The notes under the pieces were generated by a model. The model was not told where the DNA came from. It was given only the letters and a program-made list of their open reading frames with translations, and ran no database searches. Positions 25,806 through 61,405 of a stretch of 64,000 nucleotides of DNA are shown here, piece after piece. How positions within the stretch are numbered: position 1 is the stretch's first letter; each line of letters opens with the position of its first letter. A program made the position numbers and the translations under genes. The stretch spans positions 186,001 to 250,000 of the forward strand of contig NW_018480037.1 in the NCBI RefSeq assembly GCF_002113885.1. Direction: 5' to 3'. The DNA is from Mizuhopecten yessoensis. Its lineage: Eukaryota.

Positions 25806-28800
25806 TTATCCAACAAATTGACTGGGATCGAGAACATCAAATTTCATTCCGTTTCCAAGTGATCCTGATGTACTTCCAGCACTTACTCCACTCGTAAACT
25901 TTGACGGATCTGTCATACTGGAAGAGGCCATCATTTGCTGATTAAGTTGATTTGGATCAAAGCTAGCAGAACCACCACTGCCACTGCCAGATCCACCACT
26001 GCTGCTTCCAGAACTGCTGCTACTTCCACTACTACTTGACCCGCCTCCACTGGACGAAGAACCACCTCCCATCATGTTGTTTGGCGACATCATTTGACTT
26101 GACCCGCCACTTGGACTTGATGAACTTCCACTTGATCCACTGCTGCTGCCCCCACTGTTGGACGCAGAACCACCACCCATCATGTTACTAGGTGACATCA
26201 TCTGACTTGAACCACTTCCAGATGAAGATCCTCCCGTAGATTGGGAACTTCCTCCACTTCCTCCACTTCCTCCCATCATCTGGCTTGAACTACCTCCGGA
26301 TGAGCTGGAAGGTCCTCCCATAGATGAAGAACTTCCACCTCCACCCATCATATTGCTTGGTGACATCATTTGACTGGAACTGCCCCCTGATGATCCGCCA
26401 CTCGAACTTGGAGATCCACCGCTGCTTCCCATATTTTGCAGGAATTGACTTGGATCGATTTTGTTTTTATCGGGACTGTTAATAGCATTCGGATCAAAAC
26501 TTCCAGAACTACTGCTGCTACCTCCGCCAGAGCCGCTACTACTGCTCCCACTACTTCCAGAACTACCTCCCGTCATGCTGCTTGGCGACATCATCTGATC
26601 TGATCCACCTCCTGATGAACTTGAAGATCCTCCCATAGATGATGAACTTCCACCTCCACCCATTGTATTGCTTGGTGACATCATTTGGCTAGAACTACCT
26701 CCTGATCCGCTTCCGCCAGACATTGAAGACATTTGCTGCTGCATATTTTGAATATTTTGCTGAAGCATATTGTTGTTCATCGATGTTGGATCAAAGCTGC
26801 TACTGCTGCCCCCACTTGCGCTACTTCCACTGCTACTGCTGCTTCCACTGTTACTACTTGGTTGTGTCTGTTGCGTCATTTGGTTGTTTAAAGCATTAGG
26901 ATTGAAGCTGCCTGTACTTGATCCTGAACTGGAACTGCTTGAAGAGGGCTGATTTCCACCACTACTAGCGCCTCCACTGTTCATGTTTTGTTGAGCTTGC
27001 TGCATCATTTGGTTGTTCAGAGCATTAGGATCAAAGCTGCTCGAACTTCCACTAGATCCTGAACTGGATCCACTCGAGGAAGACTGACTTCCACTACTGC
27101 TCCCACCTCCATTGTTCATGTTTTGTTGTGCCTGTTGCATCATTTGATTATTAAGTGAGTTTGGATCAAAACTGCCCATCGATGAAGCGCTAGAAGAACT
27201 TGATGAAGAACCTGACATCATTTGGTTAGGATTGAAGCTGTTACTAGACCCCCCAGCACTGCTACCGGAACTGCTTCCTGATGATGAACTGCTAGAACTC
27301 GAAGATGGACTCTTTGAACCACCTGATTGCATGAACTGTTGAGCTTGTTGCATTTGTTGCTGGAAAAGAGCATTTGGGTCGAAACTTCCGGAAATGCTCC
27401 CACTGTTCGCGCCCGACTGTGAAGATCCACTACTACCACCGGAAGGGCTTGCGGGGTTACTTCCCCCTGGAGATGCTACATTGTTTGAACTCCCTGTCAG
27501 AAACGACTGAGCTGCCTGAGATTGCTGTTGATAGATGGCGTTGGGGTCGAACGAAGCCCGTTTGAACGCTGAAATAAAAATGCATATTAGATTTCTTAAG
27601 TAGTAATATGGGTGACAAAATAGGAAAGACCAAGAATAGTTAACGACAATTTAACATCTACGAGAAGCAGAAAGTAATACGAAATCCCTTTTTTTATTAG
27701 TCTAATGCATTTCGTATTTTTTATTGTCTTTGCATCAAACAATATTTAATTCACACTCAGCCATATAAAACTAGTCTTAACTTTCTCGTAGTAGGTCATA
27801 AACCATGTGAGAAGATGTTACGTGAGCAAATTGCAAAACACCGTCAATACAATAATTGCCATATTGGCGAGTAATCCCAATAATTCGACTAAATACTGTA
27901 CACAGGTATATAATTATATAAGATTATCCGAAAGATAACGGAAAACGTATGTTTAGCCAGGTAAAGGACCCGGAACAATTATATTTATTTAGGAGAGAAA
28001 ATATTTTGATTTTCTGAAGACCAGTTATATTAACTGTCATTTTCCTACACAAATAAAAGACGCTGATCAACTGTTAATGATTCCTTAGATAGCTGTTATA
28101 TCTTTCGAATGTTTCTTAACTTTATGTGACTCTCTATAGTTACTGTTTAGTGCACTACGTTAACCCTAATTATTCATTACATACCAGTAGGGCATTTCAC
28201 ATAATTTGTGAAAAGAAGCACTGGTTAACCTATGCTAAATGAACTGTGGTGGGTTGTCTGTTGCTATAAATCACGGCAGTGGCGTGTAGGGTTTAAAGGA
28301 TGGGTAGTGCTGGTAGTATTTAATCCATAATTATGTTGTTGATTGAAGGATATCGCACCATATGATCCGATAATTCCAAATGACGTCGTATATCCAATGA
28401 CACATAATGATACAATTTAAATATTTTGAGTAAAAATCCTCAATAGGCAATCGTATTAAAAACTTAGATTTCATAAAGTACTCTTTTAAGCTACTACTTG
28501 TGTTCTGTTAATCGCTGGGAAGGTGCACGTGGAATTTGATTTACAATTAATAAGATATTATTTATGGAGGTATGTAAACAAACAGCTTAATAGGCTAGTG
28601 ACATATCAATGTTTAGATTATGATTCTGCCAGCGTCGAAACTATTGTGCGTAATATACTTATTGTCACACTAAGTGGTATGATCTTGATTGTGTGAGGTT
28701 TTAAACCCTTAATATAAGTTGATATAGTATACAATAGCTAACCTTGAATGAAAACAACAAGGAATCAAATATAAGTAAATGAACATAGCAACAAAAAGAA

Positions 28801-29435
28801 GGCGAAGGCAGTGTGGACCACGTCATCAAATCTCCTTACCAAAGACGAAATACAACAAATAGGAAATCACCTTGCCAAGGACGAATAACTGCAAATATGA
28901 TGTCACCTTACCAAGGACTAAGCACAACAAATAAAAAATCACTTTATCAAGATAGAATAACTGGAAAAAATAAATCACCTTACAAAAGGAGAAAGCACAA
29001 CAAACAGGACTACAACATATCATAATCAAGGACAAAGCACGACAAATGGAACAATAATCTATCGCGGACAAAGCACGACAAATGGGACAATAACCTAGCA
29101 AGGACAAAGCACGGCAAATAGGAAAGCAACACAGACACATGATATACTAAAACAATGTAAGGAACATGCAAAAATAAATAGGAAGACAAAGTAAGGAAGG
29201 AGAAGCAACAAGGAACAGGAAAAGATAGTATAATCTAAGGAGAAACAAAACATAAATTTGAACATAATGACAATATAAGCCAAACATATAACCCAGTAAT
29301 ACATAAATATGAAACGAGAGCAATATCTTTTGGTTTTATAGCGGTTGGTATGATATTGTATAAATATTAATATTTATGATTACCTGGGAGTGCATTGCAG
29401 CATGCTATGCACATGAATGCTATACAAAGAAGCAT
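25806..29435 (-). CDS. Gene A: secreted Ser/Gly/Met/Gln/Asn-rich low-complexity protein with SF[DN]PN and QMMSP repeats, ~604 aa
   Basis: Exon 1 29384-29435 encodes signal peptide MLLCIAFMCIACCNALP + G|GTAATC. Exon 2 25806-27568 follows TTTTTATTTCAG and opens in frame (AFKRASFDPNAIYQQQ...) into the 515-aa ORF, ending at TAA. It carries nine F[DN]P motifs, three DPS[QK]F motifs and five QMMSP motifs, separated by poly-Ser/Gly. Confidence 0.88.
28828..29125. repeat. Degenerate 36-bp minisatellite (~8 copies) in intron 1 of gene A
   Basis: Variants of AAATCACCTTACCAAGGACAAAGCACAACAAATAGG. Confidence 0.8.
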
Positions 29436-32400
29436 GTTTGTGGCCGCTGATGGACGTCGGGCTTGTGTGTAGAATGGTGCTAGTGGACGACTCTATTGTC
29501 GAGGTCACCTCTCAGGTCAGACCTTTATCTCTCGGACATGCTGTCGTATAATCACCCAAAATGTGTGGCTAATCAATTAGATGGCACAACATCTGCTCCC
29601 CATCTATCGTTATGCCGTAATGGCATGACTTTAGTTTATCGTCACCATGCAAGTTCGATAGAGACACATCAAGCAACAGCCATTGCAAAATGTCTTCATA
29701 TCCCAAACAGAATCATTTATTTTGTGCTTGACGATTGTACGTACAACAAAGCTAAAATACATAAACAAGTAGTTGTATCCACTGCTTGTAGAAATAAAAT
29801 CTATTTTTATGATTGTAAATTATATCAATGATATACTAAAGAAATTACTTGACAATGTCTCAAACTTTTTTTTAGCTAAGGCGTTAGCCGCCAGCTATTG
29901 GTATTACTTTAGTTAATGAGCTCAGATATTCATAAATGTCGATTTCACACAGACGGCCTCTAGCGGTAGTCACTGGTACTAAATTGAATCATATACCGGA
30001 CCTACTGTCTTTATTATGCGTAACTTTGGACTCAAATGCACTTGAATGGCTTGTAAATATCATTACTTTTCTTTATAGAACATATGATCTTATCACAACG
30101 TCGTATTCTTATTGAAAATGCACCCTGTTTATCTCAATCGGGAACTGCTACTTGAATGTAGGTCATGCATGCTACACGCAACTTCCGGTAAAAATACTTC
30201 AGTTAATGAGCTCAGATATTCATAAACGAGACATAACGTCACCTTCTAGTAATACTAAACAAACTGCAAATAAAATCCATTACCACGGACTCAAGTTCAC
30301 TCAAACGTCATTGGATATAATCTTATTCTTAGTTAGAACTAAGTATCCTTCTAAAACTTCGTATTTACTCTTGGAACTGTCGCTGGATTAACCCTTTACA
30401 CGGAAATATTGTCCTGTGATTGGCTAAAATTGGTGACATTTACGTCCCTGTTTACAATTATATATTGCGTGGTCAGAGCTATGAAGCGGTCCTGTTCCAA
30501 CTAACTGAGGATAATCAAAAGTGCTAATCAGTAATAATATATCTGATTCACGCTTCATATGATTATAATGTTATCAAAATATTGCATATTCGTTCATCGT
30601 TAAAATAACAAATCCTTACTAAAAACTCTAAAAAAAGAAACGACGGCCATGTTAGATCACGCGTGATGTTATCCGTTTCCTTATATGGCCTTCACGGCCA
30701 AATATAGTATTACTACTGATGCGGTCATGTTTACTACAATTTCCATATTTGGTCATGACACCCATATTTAGACGTCTGACCTATATCGGAAAGATTGAGG
30801 AAGTTTCCAACATGGCAGTCAATTAGGATTTCGCTTGCACTTGTTACGTAAACTTGATAATTTAACGAAATATAAGGCGGAGTATAACTTACAATTATGT
30901 AGGAGATCAACATAAAAAGTTCATATTACAAACCTATTAATGGATACGGATCCTGTCAATTAATTCTAAAATCGCCTCCGTGTGATTCACACCAGGCTTG
31001 CCTAACTAAAATGGGATCAACCGGCCGGGGCAGATGAGACCGGGAATCATGTTAGAACTAGCCACTGTCCTTCTCTAGTTCCATATTGGTATTCTAACCT
31101 GAAGGCTTTTTTTACCTTCGCAGTATTATCATTTTGTTCTATTTTCATCATAAGATATGCTATTGCATTTTTATATCGCCTTCTCGCTAATTACAGCTCA
31201 GCCAGAAACGAAAATATGCTCCGATAGGCCTACATTTTATATGTCTGTTGGTGTGATTTGTGTTTTTCGTTTATTGAAGTATTACCATATAACAGGACTC
31301 TTTTATTTCAATATACACAAAAACAACAACACCTTCGGAATGATTTCAGACATATACTGCGGGAAAACACGAGTGATCTCCCTTACATTTAGACATGCGC
31401 ACATTTTACTTTCGTTTTGTGTAGGCCTAGACATCATTCGCAACGCGAAGCGGAAAAGACGAAAATGCAGGCGAGTGTTGACTTAATGTTAGGCATGTTG
31501 TTTAAGCAGCATTGACAATGAACAATATACATACACTTCTGCAACGTTTACCTACTACTGATTCATAAATAAGGCTATGTATCCCGATTTCGGTGACTTG
31601 TGGCCAAGCATGCGGCCGAAGCCGCAGAGAATGGCGCATGTTGTCAGCGGCGATGACAAAAAGGAAGGTGCTTCTACGGTATGTATAGCAGTTATTATGC
31701 AAAAACAAACATAATAAACGGACGTTTTACTCTAGTGAATTACAGCGTCACGAGGAACGTCTTTCTCCAGACGTGTTGCAAAATTTTCGAACTGCTTAGT
31801 TGCAAACTGATTTCACTTAAGCGTTGTTTGTGAGGATATTTGGCCTTACATTTCTTCTCATTCAGTTAAAAAAAAACATGTTATAAACATTGTATTATTA
31901 GATTCATTGTGATGTTGGCTTTCATTGAAGTTTCAATTGTTATACTACTTGATGTTTTGGAAACTTAAACAAGTATAGTAGTTCTAAATATTATGAAATG
32001 ACAGAAACATTAGGCCAAACAAATTACTTGTGTTTCTACTATCAGAAAAAAATAGGGTAGGTATGTATTAGCTAGGCATTTTATTGTTAATTTGAAAAAT
32101 ATCTTTACTGCGCTAATATAGAGCAGGAGTTCTGACTTTAACAGTGCATATAAAAACTTAAGGGTATTGTAGAACACAAATCTGAGATAAGTCTGGTTAA
32201 CCACACTGGTGTCGAACACACCAATAAGTATAGTGTGTATAATATATCATAGTTTATACACATCATATTACTATTAGTGTGTCCAGTATCTGTGGGGTTA
32301 GCATAAACTCAATATTTGTTTTAAACTTTTAATTGGCCTTATATAATGATCATTTATAGGTCAGACAGGGTTTGGTTTCCAATTCGGAAACTAGACCTGT

Positions 32401-38400: not shown

Positions 38401-38988
38401 ATCGAAAATATTGATAAGTAAACTTAAGTTAGATTTATTTTGTCACACGAAGTACGTTTAAATCAGTACAAGTCTTTAAATTACCATTATTATGTCTAGA
38501 AGGCGATATAGAAAAAGTTGGCATAGACGGGAATGTTGACCTTGTCACGAGAATTGATCCTTTTAAGTTTAAATAATAGTAAGTTGGCAGCGTATGAGTA
38601 CTTTCGTGTACAACGACCGTGTATTTGCATTTCCTATGTAAAGAATACTAAACGATTAATGATTGATGATGAATTATGTCCAATCTCTTGTATAGTGTAT
38701 AATCAAATATAACCTCTCGAACTTTAGAGAGTAAATTATGTTTGAGAATAATCTTACAAGAGTGGATAAAATCACAATCAGACATCTCTAATTGAATATC
38801 TTGTTTCTACCGCGACACATAAGTACATTTAATTTTCGCTAGCCGAATGCTCTGATCGAGAGAGAACTATCCGTTAAGCGTGACGTCATAAGTCGACATA
38901 CGTAATAGGCAGGTGTGATGAAACTTATATAAGTTAAGGCAGACATTATAAGATGCAGTTACTTTTTTCGTGGAAGGAGTTGTGTGAA

Positions 38989-40014
38989 GACAAGAGACCC
39001 ATGGGCCTAACGGTCACCTGAGTTATGTAAAAACTGATGTTATCGATGTTGCCAAATGAAAAAGAAATAATTTTGAAACAAGGGTAACTTGAACTACATG
39101 TAATACAAAAGTAGTGTGAAAGATCTGGGTAGTATATGTATTATGTACAAATAGTGGTTCTGTCATTCAGCTGAATTTTGGTAAAGCACCTTGCGACCCT
39201 TCCATCTATAAGGAGTGTTTGATTCCACCATATCTGGATCTTGAGAAGAAGAATTTAGAAATTTCAGTCAATTTGACCCTTTTTTGCTCCACCCATCAAC
39301 CCCTGGGGGGTCAGTCAGGGCTCATATGTGCATACCATCAAACTGCTATCTAATACTGATAATGCTAACCAAGTTTGAATTAATTCCAATGGAAATTAAA
39401 CAAATGTTGGTCCAAAATGTGATTTCCCTATATAAACCATAGTAAAGTTAATCCCCTCCCCAGGGGGAAACGTGAGATCCCAGGGTCATGAAATTCACAA
39501 TTTTGGTAAAGCACATTAAGACCATTCCATCTATAAAGAGAATTTGATTCTACCATATCTGAATCTTGAGAAGAAGATTTTTGAAACTTCAGTCAATTTG
39601 ACCCTTTTTGGCCCAACCCATCACTCCCTGGGGTCAGTCAGGGCTGATATGTGCATACCACCAAACTGCTATCCAATGCTGATAATGCTAACCAAGTTTG
39701 AATTAACTCCAATGGAAAGTAAACAAATGCTGGCCCAAAATGTGATTTCCCTATATAAACTATAGTAAAGTTTATTCCCTTAATTTGACCCTTTTTGGCC
39801 CCGCCCTTCAGGCCCCTGGGGGCTGGGGGCCATATAATCCACAATTTTGGTTGACCTTTTGCCATGGAAGGTTTCTGCAAAATGTCATTAAAATTGGTTC
39901 TGGAGTTTTGGAGAAGTCGAAAATGTAAATTGTTTACGAACAGACGACGGACGACGACGGACAAAAGGCGATCGCAATAGGTCACTAAAGACTTTGTGTC
40001 TCAGATGACCTAAA
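38989..40014 (+). mobile_element. Non-autonomous Helentron/HINE element, copy 2 of the same family
   Basis: Same termini (ACAAGAGACCCATGGGCCTAACGGTCACCTGA ... GGCGATCGCAATAGGTCAC...TCTCAGATGACCTAAA) and the same ~325-bp internal tandem unit as 1445-2653. Confidence 0.75.
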
Positions 40015-42424: not shown

Positions 42425-43918
42425 TTAAGCGGTGCCTGGCCTTTCAGAATCGTCGTTAGAAAATGTCACTTTCTTTTTAGCTTTTATGTCAGCCATGGAA
42501 ACGAAGCCGAAGAAGTTTGTAGAACGTCCAACAACTTTAAAAGAATTTGTTTTCCGCAGAGAACTTTGTTGCGGTTTATTCTGCTTGGTTGTCTTTCGAA
42601 TACCCTTTGTTTTATCCTGTTTATTTGTGATATTTTGTACCCTAGCGGGTGTCTTGTTCTGTGTTATAACTTTTGTGTGTGTTTTCACCATACTTGCTGT
42701 AGTGGGGTTGCCTTTCTTCTCCTTCTCTGCGTCCTTAGAATTAGCAGTGCTATCTGCGTCAATCCGACTATACCATTCTGGTTGATTACTCCGTGTTGAT
42801 GAAGCCGATCTCTCAGTTTGGATAACCCTTTTTTGAGAGGAAGCAGGTTTCTCAGTTTTTTCTACAATGTCAGATTTAGCATTATTTCGTTTGGCACTTT
42901 TCACTATACTGGGAGTATTGTGCTGGCTTTTGTCCATTTTTACTGTCGATATACTCCTTGAATTACTATTTGAAGACGATGGTTTTAATGATGATGTACC
43001 TTCTTGCCGGGAAGAGTTCGTGCCTGATTGGCCATTAGCTCCTGATGAATTGTATTGCACTTTGTTGGAACTTTGGTTACTCGGCGGAGCTGACGACTTG
43101 GATGATGATAAGGGTATACTGGGTACGGGTGCCATTCGAATAGATACTCGGTCTGGTCGTCCGGGGGACATGGTGACCAGTATTTCCTCACTCCCCTGCC
43201 TATGTTTAATATTAGGATATGGCATAGCCATTCTTCTAGCATCATTTACTTCTGGTCTAGAAACATTATTAGCTCTAGAAATATTTGGACCCCTGAAAGC
43301 ATCATCATAGACAGGTCCCTGAGAGCTATATCGACGGACAGTGTTCACTGGATATGAATTGTTACTTTCAGAGCGCGCAAATTGACTGGAATCATACCTG
43401 TTTGGGGTCTCCCTCCGCGTGTTATCCATGGGCACATTAGCCATAGAAAGTCTTGATGAAGGCTGGGAGCCGTGATAAACCATGCTCAATGCAGAACTGT
43501 TCACTTCCCCGCGTGGGTATGGGCGGTATTGGTAAGTGTCTTGGCTGCTATTGGCCCTTGAGTTGGTCACACTATCGCTCCTCGCGGCGTCAATCTGCTG
43601 CTGATGTATTTCCAGGTAGGACCTGGGATTTCGACCACTGAAATTCCGAATGTCATTCAAACTCATAGTCTTTCGTAGAACTCGATTTTCGTTGTCCCTG
43701 ACATCTCTCTCCAGCCAGTATTGACGTTCCGAGTCGAGTCTATGTTTGTTGATGACCCGCTGCTGTACCCGTCTTCGCTCATCGACGACTGGTGACTGCA
43801 TCGTCCGCAGCACCTCCATCATTTCAATATCTAGTTTATCTTCGTAAAACGGTATTACGTCCATCTGTCTCATTACAGAAACATTAGGCTTTTTCGTAAG
43901 CACGTTCTCCCGCATCAT
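42425..43918 (-). CDS. Intronless orphan protein, 497 aa, basic S/N/R/K-rich and likely disordered, with a C-terminal KKKVTF motif
   Basis: A 1.5 kb open frame in AT-rich DNA with clearly elevated GC. No signal peptide and no recognisable domain. Confidence 0.75.
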   Translation of the reverse strand: MMRENVLTKKPNVSVMRQMDVIPFYEDKLDIEMMEVLRTMQSPVVDERRRVQQRVINKHRLDSERQYWLERDVRDNENRVLRKTMSLNDIRNFSGRNPRSYLEIHQQQIDAARSDSVTNSRANSSQDTYQYRPYPRGEVNSSALSMVYHGSQPSSRLSMANVPMDNTRRETPNRYDSSQFARSESNNSYPVNTVRRYSSQGPVYDDAFRGPNISRANNVSRPEVNDARRMAMPYPNIKHRQGSEEILVTMSPGRPDRVSIRMAPVPSIPLSSSKSSAPPSNQSSNKVQYNSSGANGQSGTNSSRQEGTSSLKPSSSNSNSRSISTVKMDKSQHNTPSIVKSAKRNNAKSDIVEKTEKPASSQKRVIQTERSASSTRSNQPEWYSRIDADSTANSKDAEKEKKGNPTTASMVKTHTKVITQNKTPARVQNITNKQDKTKGIRKTTKQNKPQQSSLRKTNSFKVVGRSTNFFGFVSMADIKAKKKVTFSNDDSERPGTA

Positions 43919-46965: not shown

Positions 46966-48441
46966 ATGTCCGCCGTGACTCAAGCTGTCATCTGTCTCAT
47001 TTCTCTGCTGCTTTTAACAGGTAAAATATGCACAGCTGATATACACATTTACTTCCCATTTCATTTCCGCGTACTATATCTATTAATTAATTCTATAGGC
47101 GTACTTGTGTGTCTAACGTTCAGCCACCCATTCTGATAAAATATATATTTATATACCAGAATTGAATGAATTATAGTTCAACTGAAGCGTTCAATTGTTT
47201 AAGGCCAAATACTTCCAACCAGAATGCATAGGATTTTAATATTTTGTTAATGTCATCTTCAATTCAAGTACAGGGAACTGAATCAGTGGTCGTATAATGA
47301 CAGAGAAAACACATATTCTACGGGGTTTTTTTACCGTTAAACCTCGTCAGAAAATCAATGCATGGCATCCTTAAAACCATGTGTCGGTTAAATCAGGTTT
47401 ATCTTGCTCCATTCCGAATAACACGGTACATTTTATGTTTTACCAGACTTGGCGACTGCATCTACACCTGAGTACTTGCCGGCCAGAGACTTCCTCCATT
47501 CCGACTCAAGACCGTCATTTCCCCAACCACTTGGGAAACATGAATCCTTTCAAAATACGATTCAGAAACCAATGACAAGGTCTCTATTAAAGCCCATTTG
47601 GTATGAAGGAAGTAAACCATCGAATACTGGCATATCGTTTGCTTCCCATTCAGTGCGCCCAGACTATCTCAAACCCAACAGAGAATCATATGGTCAAGGC
47701 TTATTTGAGCGACCTGACATGTGGCAATCAAACATGATGGTACCTGTGAGGCCCGAATTGGTCCAAATGACAGTGTCTAAGAACAACAGACCTATGTTGG
47801 GGATGCTGAAGCAACTGTTGAATGGTGACTTCCACATAGTGGCAGACGCTATACACGTGGATGCCATACCGATACGCAGGCAGCCTTTTATGGAAGGTAT
47901 GATTATAGTGCCTACCATATCACCTCTATTGACCAATGTAAACAATCAAGTAAAACCAGTGCAACAAATGTATTTAGGATTACCGGAAGCAGACAAACAA
48001 GAGCCAAGCATCAGCAGTTCCTTGTCAAATACCCATTCCAGCAACATGGCACACCAAGTTCCACTCGAGCTCCTTCTCCAAGAATTCAATGACCTGGATG
48101 CAAAAAATAATTTAAAACCCGATGGTCACGTCGTTACATTTGCCAGTTTATACCAAAATTATATAGAACTGCTTGAACAGCAAAACAAGAGAACAACACC
48201 TCCCATGTTATCAACTACAACTTCCACCACAATCGTGACACCAGAATCAACAGCGCACCCTACCACTCCGGAAACCGAGACAACCGTGGACGTTATCTCT
48301 ACACCCGCCATACCCATGTCTCCTGTAACGAAAAAAGAAGATGGCGGATATTCCCTCATCCAGACATCACAGGGCAAGATCACTGATGATAAGCAAGTCC
48401 TATGGCTTCCGGGTATGGCACCGGAAATGACCGGTCAGTAA
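46966..48441 (+). CDS. Gene B: secreted Pro/Ser/Thr-rich protein with a mucin-like Thr tract, ~349 aa
   Basis: Exon 1 46966-47020 encodes MSAVTQAVICLISLLLLT + G|GTAAAA. Exon 2 47447-48441 follows TTTTACCAG and joins in frame (D-LATASTPEYL...) to the 330-codon ORF. Confidence 0.85.
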
Positions 48442-49231
48442 CCGCACTCGTAGACGTCCACAAGGAAGGAACTAGAAACCTGCTGTCTGAATGCACATGC
48501 ATGAGCTAAAGCAAAGCGCCTGCTTTGTCTGGTTCATCACTGAATGATATTTTTTATTTCTATTATATGTTTTCATGTGACATCTTAATACAAGCATGAT
48601 TTGTCAGTAAAAATGTCAATATTATTGCTACCAGTTATGTTATTTGTAAGAAGAAAAATAACCGATCAATTTTATAATCTAATAATATATTTCGATATGG
48701 ACGGAAGTCATACTGAATCTTAATGATCATCATAGAGTGACTTGAAATTATGATACAACGATATGAATAACAGGGTTGGGGAAACGATCACTAGTTTTAT
48801 ACCTTTACTTCTGGTACAACAAAAAAGAACATAATTAGATAGGTTCAGAAACTATTATAAACACTATGGTACATTCAACATATGTTCAAATGACTCATGA
48901 GTTGGAATATATTTATAATCAATCTAGAGAATCAAACTGTTGTAAACATCTTTGTTAGTTAATAGCATACTATACTTGTACTAGAAATGTTTACGGTACT
49001 GCATACCTAAAGCTGAGAGCTTTAAGTGATGACTTCACAGAGATAATTAAAACCACAAAGGGAAAAAATGGCATTTTATTTACATACATCATCGGTTTCA
49101 AGACTGTGTTAATGACCTGAGTTATATACATAAACTTCACAAGATATGTCATGAATTTCTGTGTTATACATTAATGTTACATCTCAATAAAATTGATTTA
49201 CTCTATAGCAACCAGAGAGACTGTTTTGGAA

Positions 49232-52200
49232 TTATAAAATACAGTAAACCATGCAAGGTAGATGAGCATTCGGGTCGCAGCTTCCTGCTAACATAGAATT
49301 TGGATCGAAGGATCCAACTTGCATGATACGGAGTGGGGTCACAGTGAGGCTTATAATTAATGGTGTCTTCCAGTTCCTAAGAAAATAGAAATCATACAAA
49401 TTTCAGGAAATCTTTTAAAAATGGAATACTTTTTTTCTGATGACTATAGCAAATTCCTTGTTATTACGCACATTCATTATATATACTAAAACAGTTCATC
49501 AAACAAGACGATGATACACACCTTCCCTATGATCCACCGGAGAATCCACTGTCACTACCAAATACCCCGCTGCTGCTATAGCTTCTGCCTTACCCAGATT
49601 AGGACCCAAACCTTGAACCGGACCCGAAACAAAAACTACATTCAGAAGTTTTCAAAACAACTGGAGCTGAACCCACCAGAACCTGTTCTGGTTCAAGGCA
49701 TCGGGGTCAAAGGGCCCTGAAAAGTAACAACAACCTGTACATCCTACTTCATCAAATGTTACATAAACGAGACATGCAAATATACCCATTACATTTCGTC
49801 ATGACAAATATGATAATTTTTTATTATTTGGTTTCTTAGAACAAAAAGACTAATTTAGTCGTCACCTATCATCAATCAATGTTTCATGATAAGAACACGT
49901 AATAACGGAATAGCTTACGGTGCGTGATAACCACACATACAGTTTTCAGCTAAACATGATGCTACATTGATTAAAATTACTTTCTCACCATCTGCTAGGT
50001 AGTCAAATACAAGTACCTTATAAACTTACCATCGACTAGTCATTTATACACATGGTCGCCCCAAAATAAAAGATTATTCTGCCCTTTAATGTCTATAGTT
50101 GTTGATAAGCTGTTAAACTCAAACAAACAAAATTAGTACTTTAACTTACTAAACTCACCGTCGTTTTTACATGAAGGAACATTACCCCCAAAAATATCCC
50201 CGTCGGCTAAGCATAAAGGTACTATAACCAAATAAACTCACCGTCGGCTAAACATTAAGGTACAATAACCAAAAAACTCACTGTCAGCTAAACATAAAGG
50301 TACTACAACCAATAAACTCACTATCGGCTAAACATAAAGGTACTATTACCAAATAAACTCACTATCGGCTAAACATAAAGGTAATATAAACAAATAAACT
50401 CACTTTCAGCTAAACATCAACGTACTATAACCAAATAAACTCACTGTCGGCTAAACATAAAGGTACTATTACCAAATAAACTCACTATCGGCTAAACATA
50501 AAGGTAATATAAACAAATAAACTCACTTTCAGCTAAACATCAACGTACTATAACCAAATAAACTCACTGTCGGCTAAACATAAAGGTACTATTACCAAAT
50601 AAACTCACTATCGGCTAAACATAAAGGTAATATAAACAAATAAACTCACTTTCAGCTAAACATCAACGTACTATAACCAAATAAACTCACTGTCGGCTAA
50701 ACATAAAGGTACTATTACCAAATAAACTCACTATCGGCTAAACATAAAGGTAATATAAACAAATAAACTCACTTTCAGCTAAACATCAACGTACTATAAC
50801 CAAATAAACTCACTGTCGGCTAAACATAAAGGTACTATTACCAAATAAACTCACTATCGGCTAAACATAAAGGTAATATAAACAAATAAACTCACTTTCA
50901 GCTAAACATAAAGGTATTAAAACCTAATAAACTCACTGTCGGTTAACATAAACGTAATACGACCAAATAAACTCACTGTCACCTAACATAAAGGTACTAT
51001 AACCAAATAAACTCACTGTCGGCTAAACATAAACGTACTACAACCAATAAACTCACTATCGGTTAAACATAAAGGTACTATTACCAAATAAACTCACTAT
51101 CGGCTAAACATAAAGGTAATATAAACAAATAAACTCACTTTCAGCTAAACATCAACGTACTACAACCAATAAACTCACTATCGGCTAAACATAAAGGTAC
51201 TATTACCAAATAAACTCACTATCGGCTAAACATAAAGGTATTAAAACCTAATAAACTCACTGTCGGTTAAAATAAACGTAATACGACCAAATAAACTGAC
51301 TGTCACCTAACATAAAGGTACTATAACCAAATAAACTCACTGTCGGCTAAACATAAACGTACTACAACCAATAAACTCACTGTCGGCTAAACATAAAGGT
51401 ACTATTTCCAAATAAACTCACTATCGGCTAAACATAAAAGTACTATAACCAAATAAACTCACTGTCTGCTAAACATAAAAGTACTTTAACCAAATAAACT
51501 GACTGTCAGCTAAACATAAAGGTAGTTTAACCAAATAAACTCATTTCGGCTACACATAAACGTAATATCACCAAATAAACTCACTGTCGGCTAAACATAA
51601 AGGTACTATAACCAAATAAACTCATTTCGGCTACACATAAACGTAATATCACCAAATAAACTCACTGTCGGCTTAACATAAAGGTACTATACCCAAATAA
51701 ACTCACTGTCGGCTAAACATAATCGTACTGTACCCAAATAAACTCACGGTCGGCTAAACATAATCGTACTATAACCAAATAAACTCACTGTCAGCTAAAC
51801 ATAAAGGTACTTTAACCAAATAAACTCACTGTCGGTTAAACATAAAGGTACTATAACCAAATAAACTCATTATCATCTAAACATAAAGGTACTATAACCA
51901 AATAAACTCACTGTCGGCTTAACATAAAGGTACTATAACCGAATAAACTCACTGTCGGCTTAATATAAAGGTACTTTAACCAAATAAACTCACTGTCGGT
52001 TAAACATAAAGGAACTATAACCAAATAAACTCATTATCATCTAAACATAAAGGTACTATAACCAAATAAACTCACTGTCAGCTAAACATAAAGGTACTTT
52101 AACCAAATAAACTCACTGTCAGCTTAACATAGACGTACTATAACCAAATAAACTCATTATCACCTAAACATAAAGGTACTATAACCAAATAAACTCATTA

Positions 52201-54170
52201 TCACCTAAACATAAAGGTACTATAACCAAATAAACTCATTATCACCTAAACATAAAGGTACTATAACCAAATAAACTCACTGTCGTATAAACATAAAAGT
52301 ACTATCACCAAATAAACTCACTGTCGGATAAACATAAACGAACTATCACCAAATAAACTCACTGTCGGATAAACATAAACGAACTATCACCAAATAAACT
52401 CACTGTCAGCTTAACATAAACGTACTATAACCAAATAAACTCACTGTCGGGTAAACATAAAGGTACTATCACCAAATAAACTCACTGTCGGATAAACATA
52501 AACGAACTATCACCAAATAAACTCACTGTCGGCGAAACATAAACGTACTATTACCAAATAAACTCACTGTCGGATAAACATAAACGTACTATCACCAAAT
52601 AAACTCACTGTCAGCTTAACATAGACGTACTATAACCAAATAAACTCATTATCACCTAAACATAAAGGTACTATAACCAAATAAACTCACTGTCGGCTAA
52701 ACATAAACGTACTATAACCAAATAAACTCACTGTCGGCTAACTATAAAGGTACTATAACCAAATAAACTCACTGTCGGATAAACATAAACGTACTATCAC
52801 CAAATAAACTCACTGTCAGCTAAATATAAAGGTACTACAACCAATAAACTCACTGTCGGCTAAACATAAAGGTACTATTTCCAAATAAACTCACTATCGG
52901 CTAAACATAAAAGTACTATAACCAAATAAACTCAGTGTCGGCTTAACACAAACGTACTATAACCAAATAAACTCACTGTCGGCTTAACACAAACGTACTA
53001 TAACCAAATAAACTCACTGTCGGCTAACTATAAAGGTACTATAACCAAATAAACTCACTGTCGGCGAAACATAAACGTACTATTACCAAATAAACTCACT
53101 GTCGGCTAAACATAAAGGTACTATAACCAAATAAACTCACTGTCGGCTTAACATAAAGGTAATATAACCAAATAAACTCTCTGTCGGCTAACCATAAACG
53201 TATTATAACCATATAAACGCACTGTCAGCTAAACATAAAGGTACTTTAACCAAATAAACTCACTGTCGGCTAAACATAAACGTACTATAACCAAATAAAC
53301 TCACTGTCAGCTTAACATAAACGTACTATAACCAAATAAACTCACTGTCGGCTAACCATAAAGGTACTATAACCAAATAAACTCACTGTCAGATAAACAT
53401 AAACGTACTATCACCAAATAAACTCACTGTCGGCTAACCATAAACGTACTATAACCAAATAAACTCATTATCATCTAAACATAAAGGTACTATAACCAAA
53501 TAAACTCACTGTCAGCTTAACATAAACGTACTATAACCAAATAAACTCACTGTCGGCTAAACATAAAGGTACTATAACCAAATAAACTCACTGTCGGCGA
53601 AACATAAACGTACTATTACCAAATAAACTCACTGTCGGCTAAACATAAAGGTACGTACTATAACCAAATAAACTCACTGTCAGCTAAACATAAAGGTACT
53701 TTAACCATATAAACTCACTGTCAGCTAAATATAAAGGCAGTGTAACTCAATAATCTCACTATCATCTTAACATAAAGGTACTATAACCAAATAAACTCAA
53801 TGTCAGCTAACCATAAAGGTACATTAACCATATAAACTCGCTGTCAGCTAAACATAAAAGTCCTATAACCAAATAAACTCACTATCATCTAATCATAAAC
53901 GTACTATAACCTAATAACCTCACTATCATCTAAACATAAACGTACTTTAACCTTATAAACTCACTATCATCTAAACATAAACGTACTTTAACCTTATAAA
54001 CTCACTATCATCTAAACATAAACGTACTATGACCCTGTCGGCTAAACATAAAGGCACTATATTAAAATAAACTTTCTGTCGGCTAAACATATAGGTACAA
54101 TAACCAAATAAACTCACCGCCAGCTTAAAATAACGATAGCAAGACTTGTAAACACGTACAGAGTTTTCAT
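49232..54170 (-). pseudogene. Gene C: decayed paralogue of the secreted FDP-motif family
   Basis: Exon 1 54118-54170 encodes MKTLYVFTSLAIVILSW|GTGAGT (signal-like). Exon 2 49522-49716 begins PFDPDALNQ, then carries Gly/Ser-rich text with frameshifts and TAA/TAA/TAG stops. Exon 3 49232-49376 contains MQVGSFDPNSMLAGSCDPNA. Good acceptors (TTTTCAG, TTTCTTAG). Confidence 0.65.
50135..54130. repeat. 41-bp minisatellite, ~97 copies (~4 kb)
   Basis: Consensus AAATAAACTCACTGTCGGCTAAACATAAAGGTACTATAACC, head to tail with no unique spacers. Confidence 0.97.
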
Positions 54171-55621
54171 CACGTAAGCCTGGTAGTTAATGACAAGACT
54201 GATACGTCGCTTATATTCATTGTCAATATTGGAATATGGGTCATGACTCTGTTTTCATTCTGGTCAACCTGCAGACTTTAAAGACTCCCGAAGACCAGAA
54301 CAACCATCTTCCATTTATTGAATACATACCATCTATGTTTTCTGCGTAAACATAGCTAACGAAGGCAATGGTGTTACAGTTTGGTGCCACCGAAAAAAAA
54401 CATATTACACTGAATGGTCTTGCTGTCTTGATTTTTTTTAAGGAGGACGTTTTATTTTTGATTGATATATTTCAAAAAGCTTTCATCAAGCATCATGAAA
54501 TTATTACTTATCCATCAACACAAAACTTCAGAAAGTGCCGGTCGGTAATAACATGACGAAAGTAGACTGTGGTCCTATAAATCAATGTTAAAAGTACAGG
54601 TAAAGTAACTTAATTTAATATTGACATGACATGAAGAGTCCAGATAAAAAGAATCTAAAAACGAAGAAACGAGAAAAAGAGATCTCAGGGGTCAAAATCG
54701 GGGCAGCAAACAAAGCTTTGAATCCTAAATGTAAGCGGTAAGAGGACACAGAAGTTAGCGTTCTATTCGTATGCGTGGGTAGGGGCTTTCGTTAGTTGCC
54801 TCACTCTATCATGCAGTTGTATAACGCAAGCCATTTTTTTCAATGTTTCCGAACCTACAAATCTGCTGTCATTTAGAAAGAAAAAAAAATAGATATTGAT
54901 ATTTTATTATAATAATCATGTTATTGCTAGAGGTAGGCAAATTATTCCAATAATCCAAAGACTTTGAAAAACGTTGTAATAACTTAAAAATTGCATTTCT
55001 TTAAACATTGTTCTTTTAATCAATGTACTAGATACGAGTACCAGTCACACATTGTCGATATATTTTATTCTACATTGAGGTATTCTGATATTTTAGGAAC
55101 ATAGAATAATAGGCTTGCACCCAAACAGACTTTAAATATTCCGTATTGAGTGTAGGTAAAGTGTCTTTTATAACACTTTGTATCTGTTTGGTTAACCATT
55201 ACATACTTAATAATATTTCCTAATAAAGTTGAATGGAATATTAAGATAATGAAGCATACTCCATTATACACTCCCATTATCTATGATTAATCAAACATCA
55301 GTTATATAATCCTGTTCTTGTATAAATTTGACTTTGCTTACAATGGTATGGAACATATAAGTTGCAGCAGGATTATACTAATTATATTCTGGTCTGTCCT
55401 ATTCATCCATGAAAATACAACCTCCAAATCAATGTAAACAAGCAAATTCGTGGAATTTATATCCCCCGCTTGCAGGTCATATTGTAGGTTAACATTATTG
55501 AGGTTAAGTTTAAACATGCGAGTATCGTGCTGTTGAGACATAATGTATAGCTTGAAACTCGAAGAAAGAAAAAAGTCTTATACAGAGGTTACACTTTTTA
55601 TTGAACATGTAGGTATATAAT

Positions 55622-56001
55622 AACGTTTTTCGTTATTCAAGGGCCATAACTCCGCTAAATAAGGTCATCGAACCCAGTCGAGCCCTTAAGGCATTTAACC
55701 CTGGTATCAAGTTTGAAGAAAATCGGTTAACATTTGTTGCAGTTATTGCACGGAAACAGCAGATAATAGCGTTTTTCGTTATTCAAGGGGCCATAACTCC
55801 GCCAAATAAAGTCCACTGAAAGTGGTCATTGAACTTGGCCGAACCCTTAAGGCATTTAACCCACTTACCAAGTTTGAAGAAAATCGGTTAATATTTGTTC
55901 CAGTTATTGCATGGAAACGAAGCAGACAGACAGGCAGACAGACAGACAGATGGTCAAACCCAAATTAATATCCTCCATTTCGGCGAAAGCAGGGGATAAC
56001 A
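55622..56001 (+). mobile_element. 3' part of a second HINE-like element
   Basis: Two ~146-bp tandem units (CGTTATTCAAGGG..CCATAACTCC), a (GACA)n microsatellite, and a terminal hairpin ATCCTCC...TTTCGGCGAAAG...GGGGATAA. Confidence 0.55.
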
Positions 56002-57309
56002 ACACATATATGCCGGTAGCCTGTTCAGAGACAATAGAGGAGCCGTTTATATTCAATATGTATGTTATTTTTTAAACACTTGTGACAATTGTGTACTAAT
56101 CATATCGAATTCTCACTCTTCCATGTCATCTGGACAATGATATAAGCATTGCATTACAGGGAACCACCTCCCCGACATCCAGGGTAAAAAAAAATATTTA
56201 ACACTTAATAAGTCTCAAAAACTCTGGAAAACCTGGTGATGTCCTAGATCATCCATGTTTCACTAAACAAAAGTTGTAGAAATAAAAAATAGAAAAAATA
56301 AAAAAAATAAAAATTGACAGTTGACTGTGCTGTGTCAGGCTAGAATGCCTCGCCACCCTATTCGAACCAACCACGTTTACATCCGCCCTGCCACACGTAA
56401 ATCTCGTCCAGCTAACTTCTCACCGACCGAGCCATGTACTATGCATACCCACTTTCACCTGTATAATTCGCTATGAATATTCATTACTCTCAAGTCTCAC
56501 GCCTGTCTGAAACCTATAATTATTAGGAAATGAAACATACAAACAATTATTAACTGCTATACTACGTAACGCAGCAAAATTTGATTCTATTGGCGTCAGT
56601 CATTTATCATACGTAACAACGACGGCGACCCATGTGAAAGATGATTGCACCATTAAAGTCGGGTAATAGTAGTAGATACAGTATGCCAAATATGAATCAC
56701 ACTGCACCATACAGCTGTTTCGTCCTTCTAGGACTTATCAGTGATGCTATGGGCCTAAAATTTCGAAATCCAGACTGGTCTAAACTACGGTTCAAACCAA
56801 TGGGCAGGTGACAACGACAAAACAGGAAACCAGAAATACAATAACATATAAGCAAAATAAACCATATGCATAATTTAATTCAGATGAAATTTGCAATAAA
56901 ACACTTCCCACAGCTAATACACATTGATAAATTGATGCACTGAATGGATTAAATATATCCTGACACTCCGTCCATCAGGCTTATATCAGAGATTGTAAAC
57001 ATTTGTAAGGAAGTAAGGCATTTCTTCCTTAACTGAAGTTACAGTACCTACAGACAATTATTATATTGCCAATCCTGCCTGTGTGTTTAGCGATACTAGC
57101 CACACAGCTGCTTCCTCGGGTTAGTGACGTGACTGAAGAGGGGGAAATGACGATAAACTTATCAGACTACCCGATAACGTCACCGGACATCACGGTAGGA
57201 TGGCCATGTTATTGCATTACTATTATTATTACTGGATTGTAGACAAGAGAAAAATATTCACGTACACAGACCATGCATTAATTGATTGATTCGTTAGTAC
57301 AGGACGAGG

Positions 57310-60300
57310 ATGACAGGCACCATGACTTTGGCCGCTATTGTTTTGATAATAATGTGGATCTCCGGTAAGTAAAGTAGCATATGCTCCCGCGAAAAGAACA
57401 AAATTTAACATTATTAGTAATTTACAAGGTTAGTTCATTCTTATTCCTATAGAGATCCAAAATTGTTATCCCATTTGATAAAATATCATATATTGCATGT
57501 ATTAGATTCAGTTTTAAATACAGAAAAAATAATTTATATTTTCCGTAAAGAAGGAAGTGAACGCATGTTGCACATTGGCAAAGATATTATAACCACGGTT
57601 AATAGTTTTGTTATCTTAAACACTCCAACTCTGACTTGTTTACCGTTAAACTTGAGACCATGGTGGATTTAAACGTTTTACAGATTACATTTTACATTAA
57701 TCTTTACACATTTCATTTACCAAATTCTACACATATGCTTGCCCTCAATACAGGAGGTTATACATTTTAGCATTATTAAGAGATTGAAATATTCAGACAA
57801 AGGATTCATGAATGTTTACATGGCTTTTCTGTCAGTTGTGCAATTTAAACCATCATTGAACGATGATTAAATGAAAAGAACATAAAGCAATATAATAAAA
57901 ATACATGTTGTTTAAGTAGATATTCATTCTAATAATAACGAAACAGGATTTAACTAATTTAGAAAATAATCATGACCGATTTATGACAATCTAGTGTCTT
58001 ATAATAAATTGTAACTCTGAATCTGAGTATACAGATTATATGGTATATGTTTTATTTTTGATGTCGTAGGTGTTTTGTTCTAATGTGTTTATATATTGGA
58101 GTTATCTCCCATTGTCAATTATTTACTAAATACTAAAACCGAACACGTTTTGTTAGCATAATGCCATCTCTATCACATCATTATCTAGCTGATCAATTTG
58201 TTATTATGATCAATAAACATTGAGTTATCACTTTACTTATCCAGGTAGCAGCTCCATCACACTACCCGGTCTTGACGTCAGCACAAGTATAGATGACCCT
58301 GCCCCGTTCCATCTACCACCATATCTCAATCCTGTAAACAAGGGTATCGACGGCACGACAACTCAACCCACTACTCGCTCGCCGCCCGCACAACCACCCG
58401 CCTCTCACAGCAACACCGCCGGACAAAATGGTAACAAGTTCTCAAACTATCTCATACAAACTCTTACTCACATGGACGCCAACTCTCTAAAGACGCTATC
58501 TCAAATTATCAACCTGGAACTGAATAAACAGTCACCGTCGGGTCAGATTCAAGGCCAAACCCAAAGCCAGACAGATACCCAAGGTCTCATCCAAGGTCAA
58601 ATACCCTTGAAAACGAATATTGGTCAGCGTCCCCATATAGTTGATGGGAGTTTCACTGGAACATCAGATAGCCAACATCAACATGCAACAATAACAGGAA
58701 GTCCCAAAATACAGCAGGAAGGCCAAGGTCATTCTCAATACAACAACCTATCAAAAAAGCCACCTTCAACTGGTTTCAACAGTGGGCAGACACTGATTTC
58801 CCCACAACAACAGTCTATTGGATCCTCCACAAACCAGCAATCTCAAACGGTATCTTCACTTGGTAAAACGCAATTAAACCCTGGGTACATGAGTGCTTCT
58901 GGAATTGCAGATACCAATGGCCACAGGGACCAGAATAGTCCTAACACAATGTTTCATAATGCAGAGGTCGGTAGTAGACCATTAGCCAGTGAAGTGGAAA
59001 CATCATTTGATCCGAACAAGCTGATGGCATCGATAGAAGCAGAAACGTCACAATATAACCCAAATGCCTTTCTGACAAAGCAGATCTATATCACTGCAAA
59101 CCAATGGAATGCAAATCAGAACCAAGTCCCACAGCAAACACAACAAACCAGTCCAGTTCAGACTGATGAGACAGACGTACAAGAAAATAACAAGCCGAGC
59201 ATTATGGGGACCTCACAGTTAAACTTCAAGCCTGATTCGATGATGGCAGCACTAGGAATGAAAGGTCATGTATTCACCTTTGATCCTGACAAGATCAACT
59301 CCTATGGCAGTAGTGGATTCCAACCTGGTATGTATCCACCGTCTTTTGGCAACAAGGAAATTCCAAAGAATATGTTCAATGCGGATACAGTCAACAAAGA
59401 TCTAATGACTTACAGCGGACAGTCAAAACAGCAGCTTAATCAGGAGGAGAAAGTCGTCCACCATTCTGCCTACAATCCAGACATATTTAATCATCCGGCT
59501 GTAAAAACCGTGCCAAGCACCTACTTACAATTCATGGGAAATGAAGGTAGGGTAACTGTTAACCCATATGACAAACCATTAGCAAAACCCGTACCCACAC
59601 CATCACAAGCACGTCTTCGACAACAGTTCAGAAACAATTTCCATCAAGACAGCCGTTATGCTAACAATGTCCAACAGACACACGCACAGCCACTGTCACC
59701 GATCAGTGGCAAAGACAACACGTTTTCTATAACCAGAACGTACCAGGCAGCATTTAACCCTGACCGGATCAATGCTGCTCAACGCCAGTTTGATCCGGAC
59801 TCGCTCATTAAATCTCTGTTTATTGGGGAAGACAGTCAAGCATTACCTGATCCATTCGAGACAAAATTCCTGAGAAAATCATCTCGTAATGAAAATGGAA
59901 CAGAGGTCGTAGAAGCAAATATTTCTAGGCCACATACACCCAGTCCAAAGTCCAAAGATTCACAACAATCCACCACATTATCCAGTACAATAACACCCAC
60001 TGACCAACCAGAGACGACTATTGGTTCTACCGTGAGTGTGAATCCGCCGAGGGTTGAGGGACCCTTGTTTAATCCCGACAACGTCAATGCAGGTATCGCA
60101 CAAATGATGAACTTTAGTCCCGGATCTCTGATGATGGGATATAACCAGGTACCGGCGGCAGCCCAAACCAACACTTTTCTAAAGGCTGAATATAACCCTA
60201 ATCAGGTTAATCAAATGGGGAAGTTTCAATCCGGATTGTCTCCTATGATGTCTGCACTGACAGGAGGGATTGGCGGGACTGGTAACACTGGGTCACAGGC

Positions 60301-61405
60301 TGGATCTCAGCCAAGTTACGACATGTCTGGAAGTATGACAGCCATGTTTAATCCAGCCGAAGTGAACAAGGCAAAGATGAGCTTCGATATATACAAACAG
60401 ATGGGTTTCAATGAAAACTCGGGTAACGCGATGTTTGACCCAATGAAGGTCAATGTTCTTGCAACTCAGAAATCCAATCAGTCGACTGAAGCGACCAACG
60501 AAAACAATGGCGGCTTTCTCAGCACCGGTGGAATGAGTATGATGGATAATTCAGCTTTCACAGGGAATTTTGACCCAAATCAAGTCAATCAGGTATCTAT
60601 TACAGCCATGCAAGATAACAAGCAGCAAAACAATTCATCAAACACCTCCAACATGGATTACATGTCGGCATTTTTGGGAATGGGTAGTTTAGGAAGTACT
60701 GGGGGTTCAGCGTTTGGCGGAAGTTTTAATCCATCGGAAGTAAACACTGCTGCTTTTAATCCAAATGATGTTAACAATGTAAAAATGAACTTTGATCCGT
60801 CTAATATGCTTGATCGTAATCCAGGCTATGATTTGGACAAGGCGACTCAAACGAATTTCGATCCAACAAAAATCAATGATGTCCACATGAACTTCGAGCC
60901 GCCTTTCATTCCTGTGGATAAAAACAAGAACGATAACTCCACAACTACTAGTTCATTTAGTCAGTACAATTCCGAATTCACTCCGGGGCAGCTTTTTCCA
61001 AATGGTAAAGCTATGGTGTTTAATCCTACTTCGGTAAATCAGGCAAAAATGCACTTTAGCGCCGTAGACATGCTCAACTCCAAGGGTGTTGATGGTTCTA
61101 ATACGTTGCAGGACAACACGCTCTTTAGTCCGCAACTGCCAAATAAGAACTCAAACATTGGGATGCCTGTGTTCGATCCGGTAGCAGTCAACAATATGCA
61201 ACTTAACTTCGTTCCAAACTCAGGAATGAGTATTTATCAATCTTCATCGATAGATACTTCTTCAGGACAAGAACATAAGCCGAGTACCGCATCAATGTCC
61301 TCTCTCACCACTCCATCCACGATAACTAGCCAGACAACACTCACCACGACGCCTAGTCCGAGTTCCTCCCCAAACCCTACCGAAGAAAATCATATTAAAC
61401 ATTAA
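57310..61405 (+). CDS. Gene D: secreted Gln/Asn/Ser/Thr/Met-rich protein with 17 [FY][DN]P repeats, ~1071 aa
   Basis: Exon 1 57310-57364 encodes MTGTMTLAAIVLIIMWIS + G|GTAAGT. Exon 2 58245-61405 follows CTTTACTTATCCAG and joins in frame (G-SSSITLPG...) to the 1061-codon ORF. Confidence 0.9.

Follow-up and report, generated by a model that had tools for sequence, protein, structure and literature searches.

A group of secreted FDP-motif genes in the scallop Mizuhopecten yessoensis is part of an old bivalve-wide tandem cluster and carries an unnamed 57-residue module

The window considered here is a stretch of 64,000 nucleotides (nt) of the scallop Mizuhopecten yessoensis, located on scaffold NEDP02076710.1. 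Between its positions 25806 and 61405 a preliminary description of the DNA had placed four genes (A to D) for secreted low-complexity proteins, three of them with a repeated motif of the type [FY][DN]Pxx[VIL]N. This span is part of an old, bivalve-wide tandem cluster, the products of which are secreted, free of cysteine, weakly charged and largely disordered. Genes A, C and D, together with a further gene (E) that starts after D, appear from sequence comparison to be paralogues arranged around one module, a reading that is well supported for A and E and modestly for D. This FDP module represents a new domain family, so far without a name or a Pfam entry, within a kind of gene that is itself known, namely the clustered, fast-evolving genes of molluscs coding for secreted low-complexity proteins. 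The searches described below were performed with single exons, and neither they nor the structure predictions involved full-length models of A or E. The exons and remnants of the FDP genes within the window are:

25806-27568, minus strand: gene A, large exon of 586 codons plus stop, acceptor tttcag
29384-29435, minus strand: gene A, predicted signal-peptide exon of 52 nt, coding for MLLCIAFMCIACCNALP followed by G, donor GTAATC, phase 1
49235-49798, minus strand: gene C remnant, a pseudogene with an exon-2 piece at 49653-49722 and a last-exon-like trace near 49309
57310-57364, plus strand: gene D (LOC110442573), exon 1, a 55-nt signal exon with donor GTAAGT, phase 1
58245-61405, plus strand: gene D, exon 2, with 17 F[DN]P motifs, Q/N/S/T-rich spacers and a Pro/Thr/Ser-rich (PTS-rich) tail
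63458-63524, plus strand: gene E, exon 1, a 67-nt signal exon, phase 1; fifth family member

Gene products, motif and module

The motif had been counted nine times in A and 17 times in D, and both counts were confirmed for F[DN]P, with 12 of the 17 copies in D fitting the strict form [FY][DN]Pxx[VILM]N. The motif is more frequent than composition alone would provide, composition-shuffled sequences yielding 0-0.02 strict and 0.05-1.05 loose copies. In a six-frame scan of the whole 64 kb, clusters of the strict motif were found only in A, D and the C remnant (in the last within two short minus-strand frames at 49309 and 49711), along with four isolated single matches elsewhere in the window, one of which lies inside D in another frame.

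The motif had been regarded as a seven-residue sticker, and its conservation stands, but the true conserved unit is larger. In E-type genes it is a module of exactly 57 residues, found in 20 copies from five species with zero indels and with the pattern xxP[KSN][FY]DPNxVNQ[IL]xxx[FM]LDPSxxxLG..GG..G[FY][DN]PDQ[FIW]N[ST]xxFx[FML]F[ND]P..... Copies from Saccostrea and Dreissena are ~80% identical on our own count, and such identity at a fixed length argues for a defined structure or a binding partner. The module is present in full in E-type genes, once at the C-terminus of A, in recognisable form in the invariant core of D, and in C-type genes in a reduced state, as tandem GSFDPNxx units.

A hidden Markov model (HMM) of the module, made from 14 copies, was run against all 1072 six-frame open reading frames (ORFs) of the window. 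It ranked A first (E-value 5.4e-5, 19.4 bits; none of 500 shuffles was reported), D second (E-value 0.0034, 13.6 bits, with a maximum of 8.2 bits in 500 shuffles) and the C remnant third (E-value 0.12, 8.7 bits, a short, partial and weak match). In A the whole module aligns with the C-terminal 52 residues, which constitute a diverged copy, and in the D product residues 857-904 align colinearly with the module, the most conserved block of the protein being residues 846-906. Alignment of a D profile with an E exon by hhalign gave an E-value of 1e-4 with 56% probability, and it is on this result and the HMM ranking that A, C, D and E are read as paralogues. Gene A gave only a motif-level match when aligned to the D profile (hhalign, 6% probability) and again in pairwise comparison with an A-like gene of oyster.

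As had been supposed, no known domain is present: Pfam gives no family for A, B or D. Pfam searches with E exons, C-type exons and the oyster A-like gene produced sub-threshold chance matches only (PF25296, 15.6 bits with a cutoff of 45), while the best match of the module among PDB chains was an unrelated superoxide dismutase loop (E-value 0.14). A literature search by LOC, XP and UniProt identifiers and by motif strings brought up no relevant paper.

The product of gene D is annotated as an "uncharacterized protein" of 1071 amino acids (aa), with the large exon 100% identical to XP_021341921.1 (M. yessoensis) and with exon 1 and the phase-1 intron supported by RefSeq. Ser, Gly, Asn, Gln and Thr make up 47% of this protein, Phe 4.7% and Asp 4.8%. 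The nine F[DN]P motifs of A are set among poly-Ser/Gly spacers with repeats of the QMMSPSNMMGGG type. Its composition is dominated by Ser (37.5%), Gly (18.9%), Gln (8.5%), Asn (7.5%) and Met (7.5%), with 3.4% charged residues, 2.2% Asp, 0.2% Tyr and neither Glu nor Cys, and it has 49 Ser-Gly dipeptides. Absence of Cys from the mature chains of A, B and D, a feature of the preliminary description, was found in all three. At 26861-27177, inside A, there is a 135-nt tandem repeat (2.4 copies, 73-79% matches) corresponding to a 45-residue unit of SSFDPNALNNQMMQQAQQNMN plus a Ser/Gly spacer, which points to a recent internal duplication.

It had also been proposed that A, B and D share one exon architecture. 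This holds for B and D, where RefSeq gives a 55-nt signal exon and a phase-1 intron, while the 52-nt exon of A is only predicted, since an annotated A product turned up neither when proteins were searched with exon 2 nor when the ORF, taken from its first ATG, was looked up exactly. In the former search poly-Ser words probably swamped the candidate list, and A may be absent from the public annotation of this genome. A C-type gene of Saccostrea has an annotated first exon with the length, phase and donor predicted for exon 1 of A. Across three species, B and the C-type, D and E-type genes begin with an exon that codes for a signal peptide only, measures 40-67 nt and ends in phase 1. First-exon predictions for these genes agree with annotated gene starts, and the first exons are hydrophobic in the RefSeq products of B and D and likewise at the annotated starts of E and C-type genes.

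The gene following D carries the motif in Mizuhopecten (locus L001), Argopecten (L005), Saccostrea (L006), Dreissena (L007) and Mytilus (L009). In M. yessoensis its module-bearing exons lie beyond the window end, at 17154-19858 of L001. Of the module copies that stand at an exon end, most finish in G[KR]R. This G-[KR]-R ending of module exons is seen in scallop, oyster, zebra mussel and Mytilus and is followed at once by the phase-1 exon boundary, and the exons that come next open with [KR]RQ[ST]. The repeat exons of E-type genes are thus symmetric phase 1-1 cassettes, which explains the near-identical exon copies seen in Saccostrea. In its first large exon (L001 17154-17870; L005 15416-16192) gene E has a second motif, xNPF[AN]xQ (for example MNPFATQTQMN), the repeats of which are embedded in Ser/Gly/Asn-rich sequence. 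It is worth mentioning that a 1469-aa model at L001 16149-24096 (window position 63458 onward, for the most part past the window end) has EF-hand matches in Pfam and looks like a fusion of the E-type FDP gene with an EF-hand gene downstream of it; the same region of Argopecten has a 1091-aa model and a separate EF-hand model of 192 aa.

Conservation of the cluster among bivalves

The genes had been taken for orphans and for a lineage-specific family, a view which does not hold, as relatives of D occur across the bivalves and the cluster is syntenic in five species. Full-length relatives from other scallops are 60% and 55% identical to D, and those in Saccostrea and in a bivalve sequence resembling the Mytilus member are 33-36% identical. 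A D-family profile made from five members and run against 1.84 billion representative proteins found 27 proteins, approximately 20 of them 776-1111 aa in length. The species named are Crassostrea virginica, Mytilus coruscus, Pinctada imbricata, Potamilus streckersoni (Unionida) and Dreissena polymorpha, all with products termed uncharacterized or hypothetical, and D-type genes with full-length colinear homology and the conserved core are also present in Argopecten and Saccostrea. No named non-bivalve was found among the profile matches, several of which come from assemblies with no species name. Contigs from Logan and ENA with D homologues are genomic and not transcripts, so they carry no evidence on splicing.

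Among 22 D members the number of F[DN]P motifs ranges from 11 to 20, as against 0.6-1.0 in shuffles, and that of Cys from 0 to 3. Their alignment has 22 columns in which F-x-P is kept, about 15 being of the type F-[DN]-P-x-x-[VILM]-N, and in several of them F, P, V and N vary hardly or not at all, with Asp and Asn swapping freely, the residue before the motif Pro being Asp in 53% and Asn in 47% of cases. When 21 homologues are compared with the scallop protein, motif residues are 58% identical and the rest 17%, which shows the earlier claim that the motif is kept as the spacers turn over to be correct; the F, P, V and N positions of the motif reach 72%. Directly after the signal peptide, several D-family members (P0001, P0024, P0031, P0033, P0036, P0040) share a conserved motif, [IVS]xLPG[LVA], and a second recurring class of motif in the family is FxPGxL.

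The order C-type (minus strand), D (plus strand), E-type (plus strand) is kept in Mizuhopecten, Argopecten, Saccostrea, Dreissena and Mytilus, with C-type and D genes kept in Potamilus. In Saccostrea, E is followed by an A-like gene (TFDPNAMMF..., GFNPNQMMGGGGS), which makes the A type a member of the cluster as well. Since the split between pteriomorph and heteroconch bivalves dates from the early Palaeozoic, the microsynteny must be very old. The extracellular materials of molluscs (shell framework, ligament, mucus) consist mostly of fast-evolving low-complexity proteins which are seldom conserved between orders. Retention of the C-D-E order across pteriomorphs and the heterodont Dreissena is unlike this usual picture.

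Proposed function and alternatives

Several known systems resemble the cluster. The vertebrate SCPP cluster, which codes for proteins of enamel, dentin, bone, milk and saliva, likewise comprises tandem, fast-evolving genes for secreted disordered proteins with a signal exon, uniform intron phase and short motifs, which arose by duplication. However, SCPP genes are a vertebrate group with phase-0 introns and acidic, calcium-binding products phosphorylated at SxE motifs, whereas the scallop cluster has phase-1 introns, SxE 0-2 times, near-zero charge and the F[DN]P module, with no sequence homology. SCPP membership was rejected on the phase-1 introns and the scarcity of SxE (0 in A, 2 in D). FG-repeat nucleoporins offer an analogy, with Phe motifs in uncharged N/Q/S/T/G-rich disordered linkers, few Cys and the formation of cohesive hydrogels. 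FG domains are, however, intracellular and based on FG, GLFG and FxFG, whereas the scallop proteins are secreted and based on F[DN]PxxVN; no homology exists between them.

Among molluscan materials, abductin, the elastomer of the scallop hinge ligament, and other ligament proteins high in Met and Gly are similar in several ways: Met, Gly and Phe abound in A and in the E-type tails (MMGGGG, FNPNxMMGGGG), Cys is lacking and Tyr is low, and the FDP family looks restricted to bivalves, as the ligament is. Abductin consists to ~60% of Gly, along with Met and Phe, and is marked by FGGMGGGNAG decapeptides in tandem. Gene A has 18.9% Gly, 37.5% Ser and no FGGMGGG. Ligament proteins of Pinctada (supplement of PMC7591529) were found to be without the motif. 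MSP-1, shematrins and KRMPs are also secreted, repetitive and Ser/Gly-rich, and the basic C-termini of C-type proteins are a further likeness; the scallop proteins differ in having no Asp-rich domains and no Gly/Tyr XGnX repeats. MSP-1 itself alternates Ser/Gly and Asp-rich domains and is high in Asp. An acidic shell protein of the MSP-1 type was rejected at 2.2% Asp and 0% Glu in A and 4.8% Asp in D, the low content of Asp and Glu speaking against a classical acidic mineral-binding shell protein, and shematrin membership was rejected as A has no Gly/Tyr XGnX repeats (0.2% Tyr). Gel-forming mucins have their counterpart in the PTS tails of D and B, but there is no Cys and no VWD or CK match in Pfam. 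The abductin, MSP-1, shematrin and mucin readings were all set aside. A last likeness is that of E-type genes to profilaggrin and the nematode polyprotein antigens, in their near-identical repeat exons with G-[KR]-R / [KR]RQ junctions; the repeat unit is unrelated in sequence, and cleavage in the scallop case is a prediction.

The motif also corresponds to a structural rule rather than to a protein family, this being the helix N-cap with hydrophobic staple, in which F-[DN]-P-x-x-[VIL] maps to positions N', N-cap, N1 and N4. AlphaFold2, run on D with a 22-sequence alignment, predicts a mostly disordered protein (mean predicted local distance difference test (pLDDT) score 41.8) with 17 short helices. 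Nine of the 17 start within one residue of a motif Pro, whereas 0.83 would be expected, and in 100,000 permutations the number always stayed below nine. For the 57-residue module (pLDDT 58, predicted template modelling (pTM) score 0.18) helices start at P37 and P50, while the first motif has just a 3-residue helix, three residues after its Pro. From these models we infer that F-[DN]-P-x-x-[VIL]-N acts as a helix-start signal. Phe would serve as the N' staple, Asp or Asn as the N-cap, Pro as N1 and Val, Ile or Leu as the staple partner at N4, and each motif would seed a short amphipathic helix within flexible polar spacers.

On this basis, the reading preferred here is that the genes encode multivalent secreted matrix or gel proteins, some of them processed at dibasic sites, with a probability that we put at roughly 0.45. 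With no Cys, almost no Tyr and little Lys, disulfide, dihydroxyphenylalanine (DOPA)/quinone and lysyl cross-links are all unlikely, and as the usual covalent links are improbable, association would be non-covalent, via the short helices with their Phe, Val and Met residues. Many weak hydrophobic helices combined with little charge and no Cys could give a non-covalent extracellular gel or an elastic matrix. The Ser/Gly and PTS tracts may carry O-glycans or glycosaminoglycans. Given their G-[KR]-R ends and [KR]RQ starts, E-type polyproteins may be cut into units by a convertase, and in A, where KR immediately follows the predicted signal peptide, a short pro-piece would be removed (AFKR, then ASFDP). 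Hinge ligament, organic shell framework and mucous gel are the most plausible sites for such proteins.

A number of points weigh against the matrix or gel reading. The role itself is read from composition, and the secretion of A is a prediction. Helix confidence in D is low (pLDDT 50-72), and eight of its 17 motifs have no predicted helix after them. Motif strings are absent from the insoluble shell and ligament proteins of Pinctada and from the Tridacna shellome, and no motif-bearing protein was found in the supplements of oyster multi-omic, bivalve toolbox and shipworm crystalline-style proteomics studies; these absences argue weakly against membership of the major shell matrix, but A, in which Lys and Arg together amount to 1.2% (seven in 586 residues), would be missed by trypsin-based proteomics. 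Furthermore, a helix cap leaves unexplained both the invariant Asn at position 7 and the ~80% identity of the module, so that a specific fold or binding partner is a serious alternative.

A bolder form of the matrix or gel reading, which we regard as doubtful, is that of an undescribed bivalve-specific domain, held in an early Palaeozoic C-D-E(-A) cassette, whose convertase-processed and glycosylated products build a non-covalent elastic or gel material that defines the bivalves. Obvious candidates for it would be the matrix of the hinge ligament or resilium and the organic framework of the shell. Such a material could have been overlooked by proteomics on account of its few tryptic sites. If there is such a bivalve-wide material, the genes would provide a sequence-to-material model based on a Phe-based capped helix in an uncharged spacer, as well as markers for the secreting cells, and trypsin-based "shellomes" would have a blind spot. 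If these are ordinary mucus-type proteins, the outcome is an improved annotation of five scallop loci and no more.

The serious alternative just mentioned would have the module act as a ligand-binding domain that docks to a partner, or folds on it, the partner being itself conserved (for instance a polysaccharide such as chitin, the face of a mineral, a receptor or an enzyme), with the spacers serving to display its copies. The fixed length of the module, its freedom from indels and its identity between Saccostrea and Dreissena fit with this, as do the invariant F, P, V and N of several D columns and the retention in scallops of the motif-free secreted gene B beside the cluster. However, the module matches neither a Pfam family nor a PDB chain, and AlphaFold2 gives it no confident fold at the scores quoted above; overall we consider this explanation unlikely.

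Less likely again is that the genes are polyprotein precursors of secreted peptides or small proteins (pheromone, hormone-like or antimicrobial), the E- and C-type products being cut at dibasic sites into units that start with Gln (as pyroglutamate) and end with Gly (as amidation donor), so that the units and not the polymer would be active. The G-[KR]-R ends of module exons in all four bivalve groups, the [KR]RQ[ST] openings of the exons that follow, the GKKK, GRK or GKK ends of C-type proteins and the KR of A are all as this would predict. Yet the units, at ~100-170 residues and of Ser/Gly-rich low complexity, do not resemble known bioactive peptides, the ~1050 residues of D contain only two dibasic pairs and show no unit structure, and dibasic sites are common in structural precursors too.

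A purely chemical role of the motif, in which Asx-Pro would undergo programmed self-cleavage or covalent cross-linking via a cyclic anhydride or imide, seems very improbable. The GDPH sites of mucins and inter-alpha-inhibitor heavy chains resemble such self-cleavage chemistry, and only Asp and Asn are tolerated before the invariant Pro, in about equal share. However, a helix N-cap followed by N1 equally prefers Asp or Asn and then Pro, the predicted helices begin exactly at Asx-Pro, and the conserved F, V and N have no part in that chemistry.

Finally, that the genes are a low-complexity artefact of chance frames or functionless compositional repeats is hardly credible and for D effectively refuted, for although A is without an annotated product or detectable database relative, stop-free frames of 614 (A) and 1062 (D) codons, measured stop to stop, lie in DNA of ~33% GC, B and D have RefSeq models, motif positions are conserved over ~20 species-level homologues with deep synteny, and shuffles match neither the motif counts nor the HMM scores.

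Gene B, the gene C remnant and neighbouring features

The other features of the window are:

42425-43918, minus strand: annotated intronless gene of 497 aa, a neighbour unrelated to the motif genes
46966-47020, plus strand: gene B (LOC110442556), exon 1, a 55-nt signal exon with a phase-1 donor
47447-48441, plus strand: gene B, exon 2, the tail Thr-rich and mucin-like, with no FDP motif
50202-54117, no strand assigned: satellite of 41 bp, ~96 copies

Gene B has a product of 349 aa, its exon 1 agreeing with XP_021341888.1, and its scallop orthologues are ~45-48% identical. It has a PTS-rich tail and not one FDP motif, and when compared with the oyster gene at the same position no significant match was obtained (BLASTP E-value 0.34; hhalign E-value 0.012, 3.5% probability). 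The inclusion of B in one sequence family with A, C and D was consequently abandoned, what it has in common with the cluster being its position, its signal exon and its phase-1 intron. Phase-1 signal exons are frequent among the secreted genes of metazoans, and so the shared architecture alone is no proof of kinship for B.

Gene C had been described as a decayed gene with a signal exon similar to those of the others. The decay is real, while the signal exon is unverified, the MGIF ORF at 49789 aligning with an intron of the Argopecten gene. An intact C-type gene of 223 aa is found on the minus strand of Argopecten irradians between the orthologues of B and D, in which a signal exon is followed by three exons made up of GSFDPNxx units in tandem, the product ending in GKKK, and Saccostrea has two C-type genes, coding for 142 and 106 aa. 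In M. yessoensis the part of exon 2 that still aligns with the intact Argopecten gene is down to 72 bp, at 79% identity; the acceptor is kept and is followed by a 2-bp deletion and larger deletions, which break the frame and make C a pseudogene in M. yessoensis. From 48441 to 57310 the assembly annotation calls no gene.

The 41-bp satellite (87% matches, strong GC and AT skew) sits between the C remnant and D, where the upstream part of C would be expected. A signal-like ORF of 53 nt (MKTLYVFTSLAIVILSW, phase 2) at 54118-54170 on the minus strand ends exactly at the satellite edge, and its GTGAGT "donor" is part of the satellite repeat unit. This ORF may be a relic of C exon 1, or it may be due to chance.

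The 497-aa gene codes for a basic protein (isoelectric point ~10.3) in which Ser, Arg, Asn and Lys abound. It lacks both a signal peptide and the motif, and Pfam likewise gives no family for it. Elsewhere in the window there is a run of 194 N at 1772-1965, which represents an assembly gap or a mask, and intergenic tandem repeats are located at 5357-5676 (24 bp x 13.6), 13660-14323 (129 bp x 5) and 39174-39780 (323 bp x 1.9).

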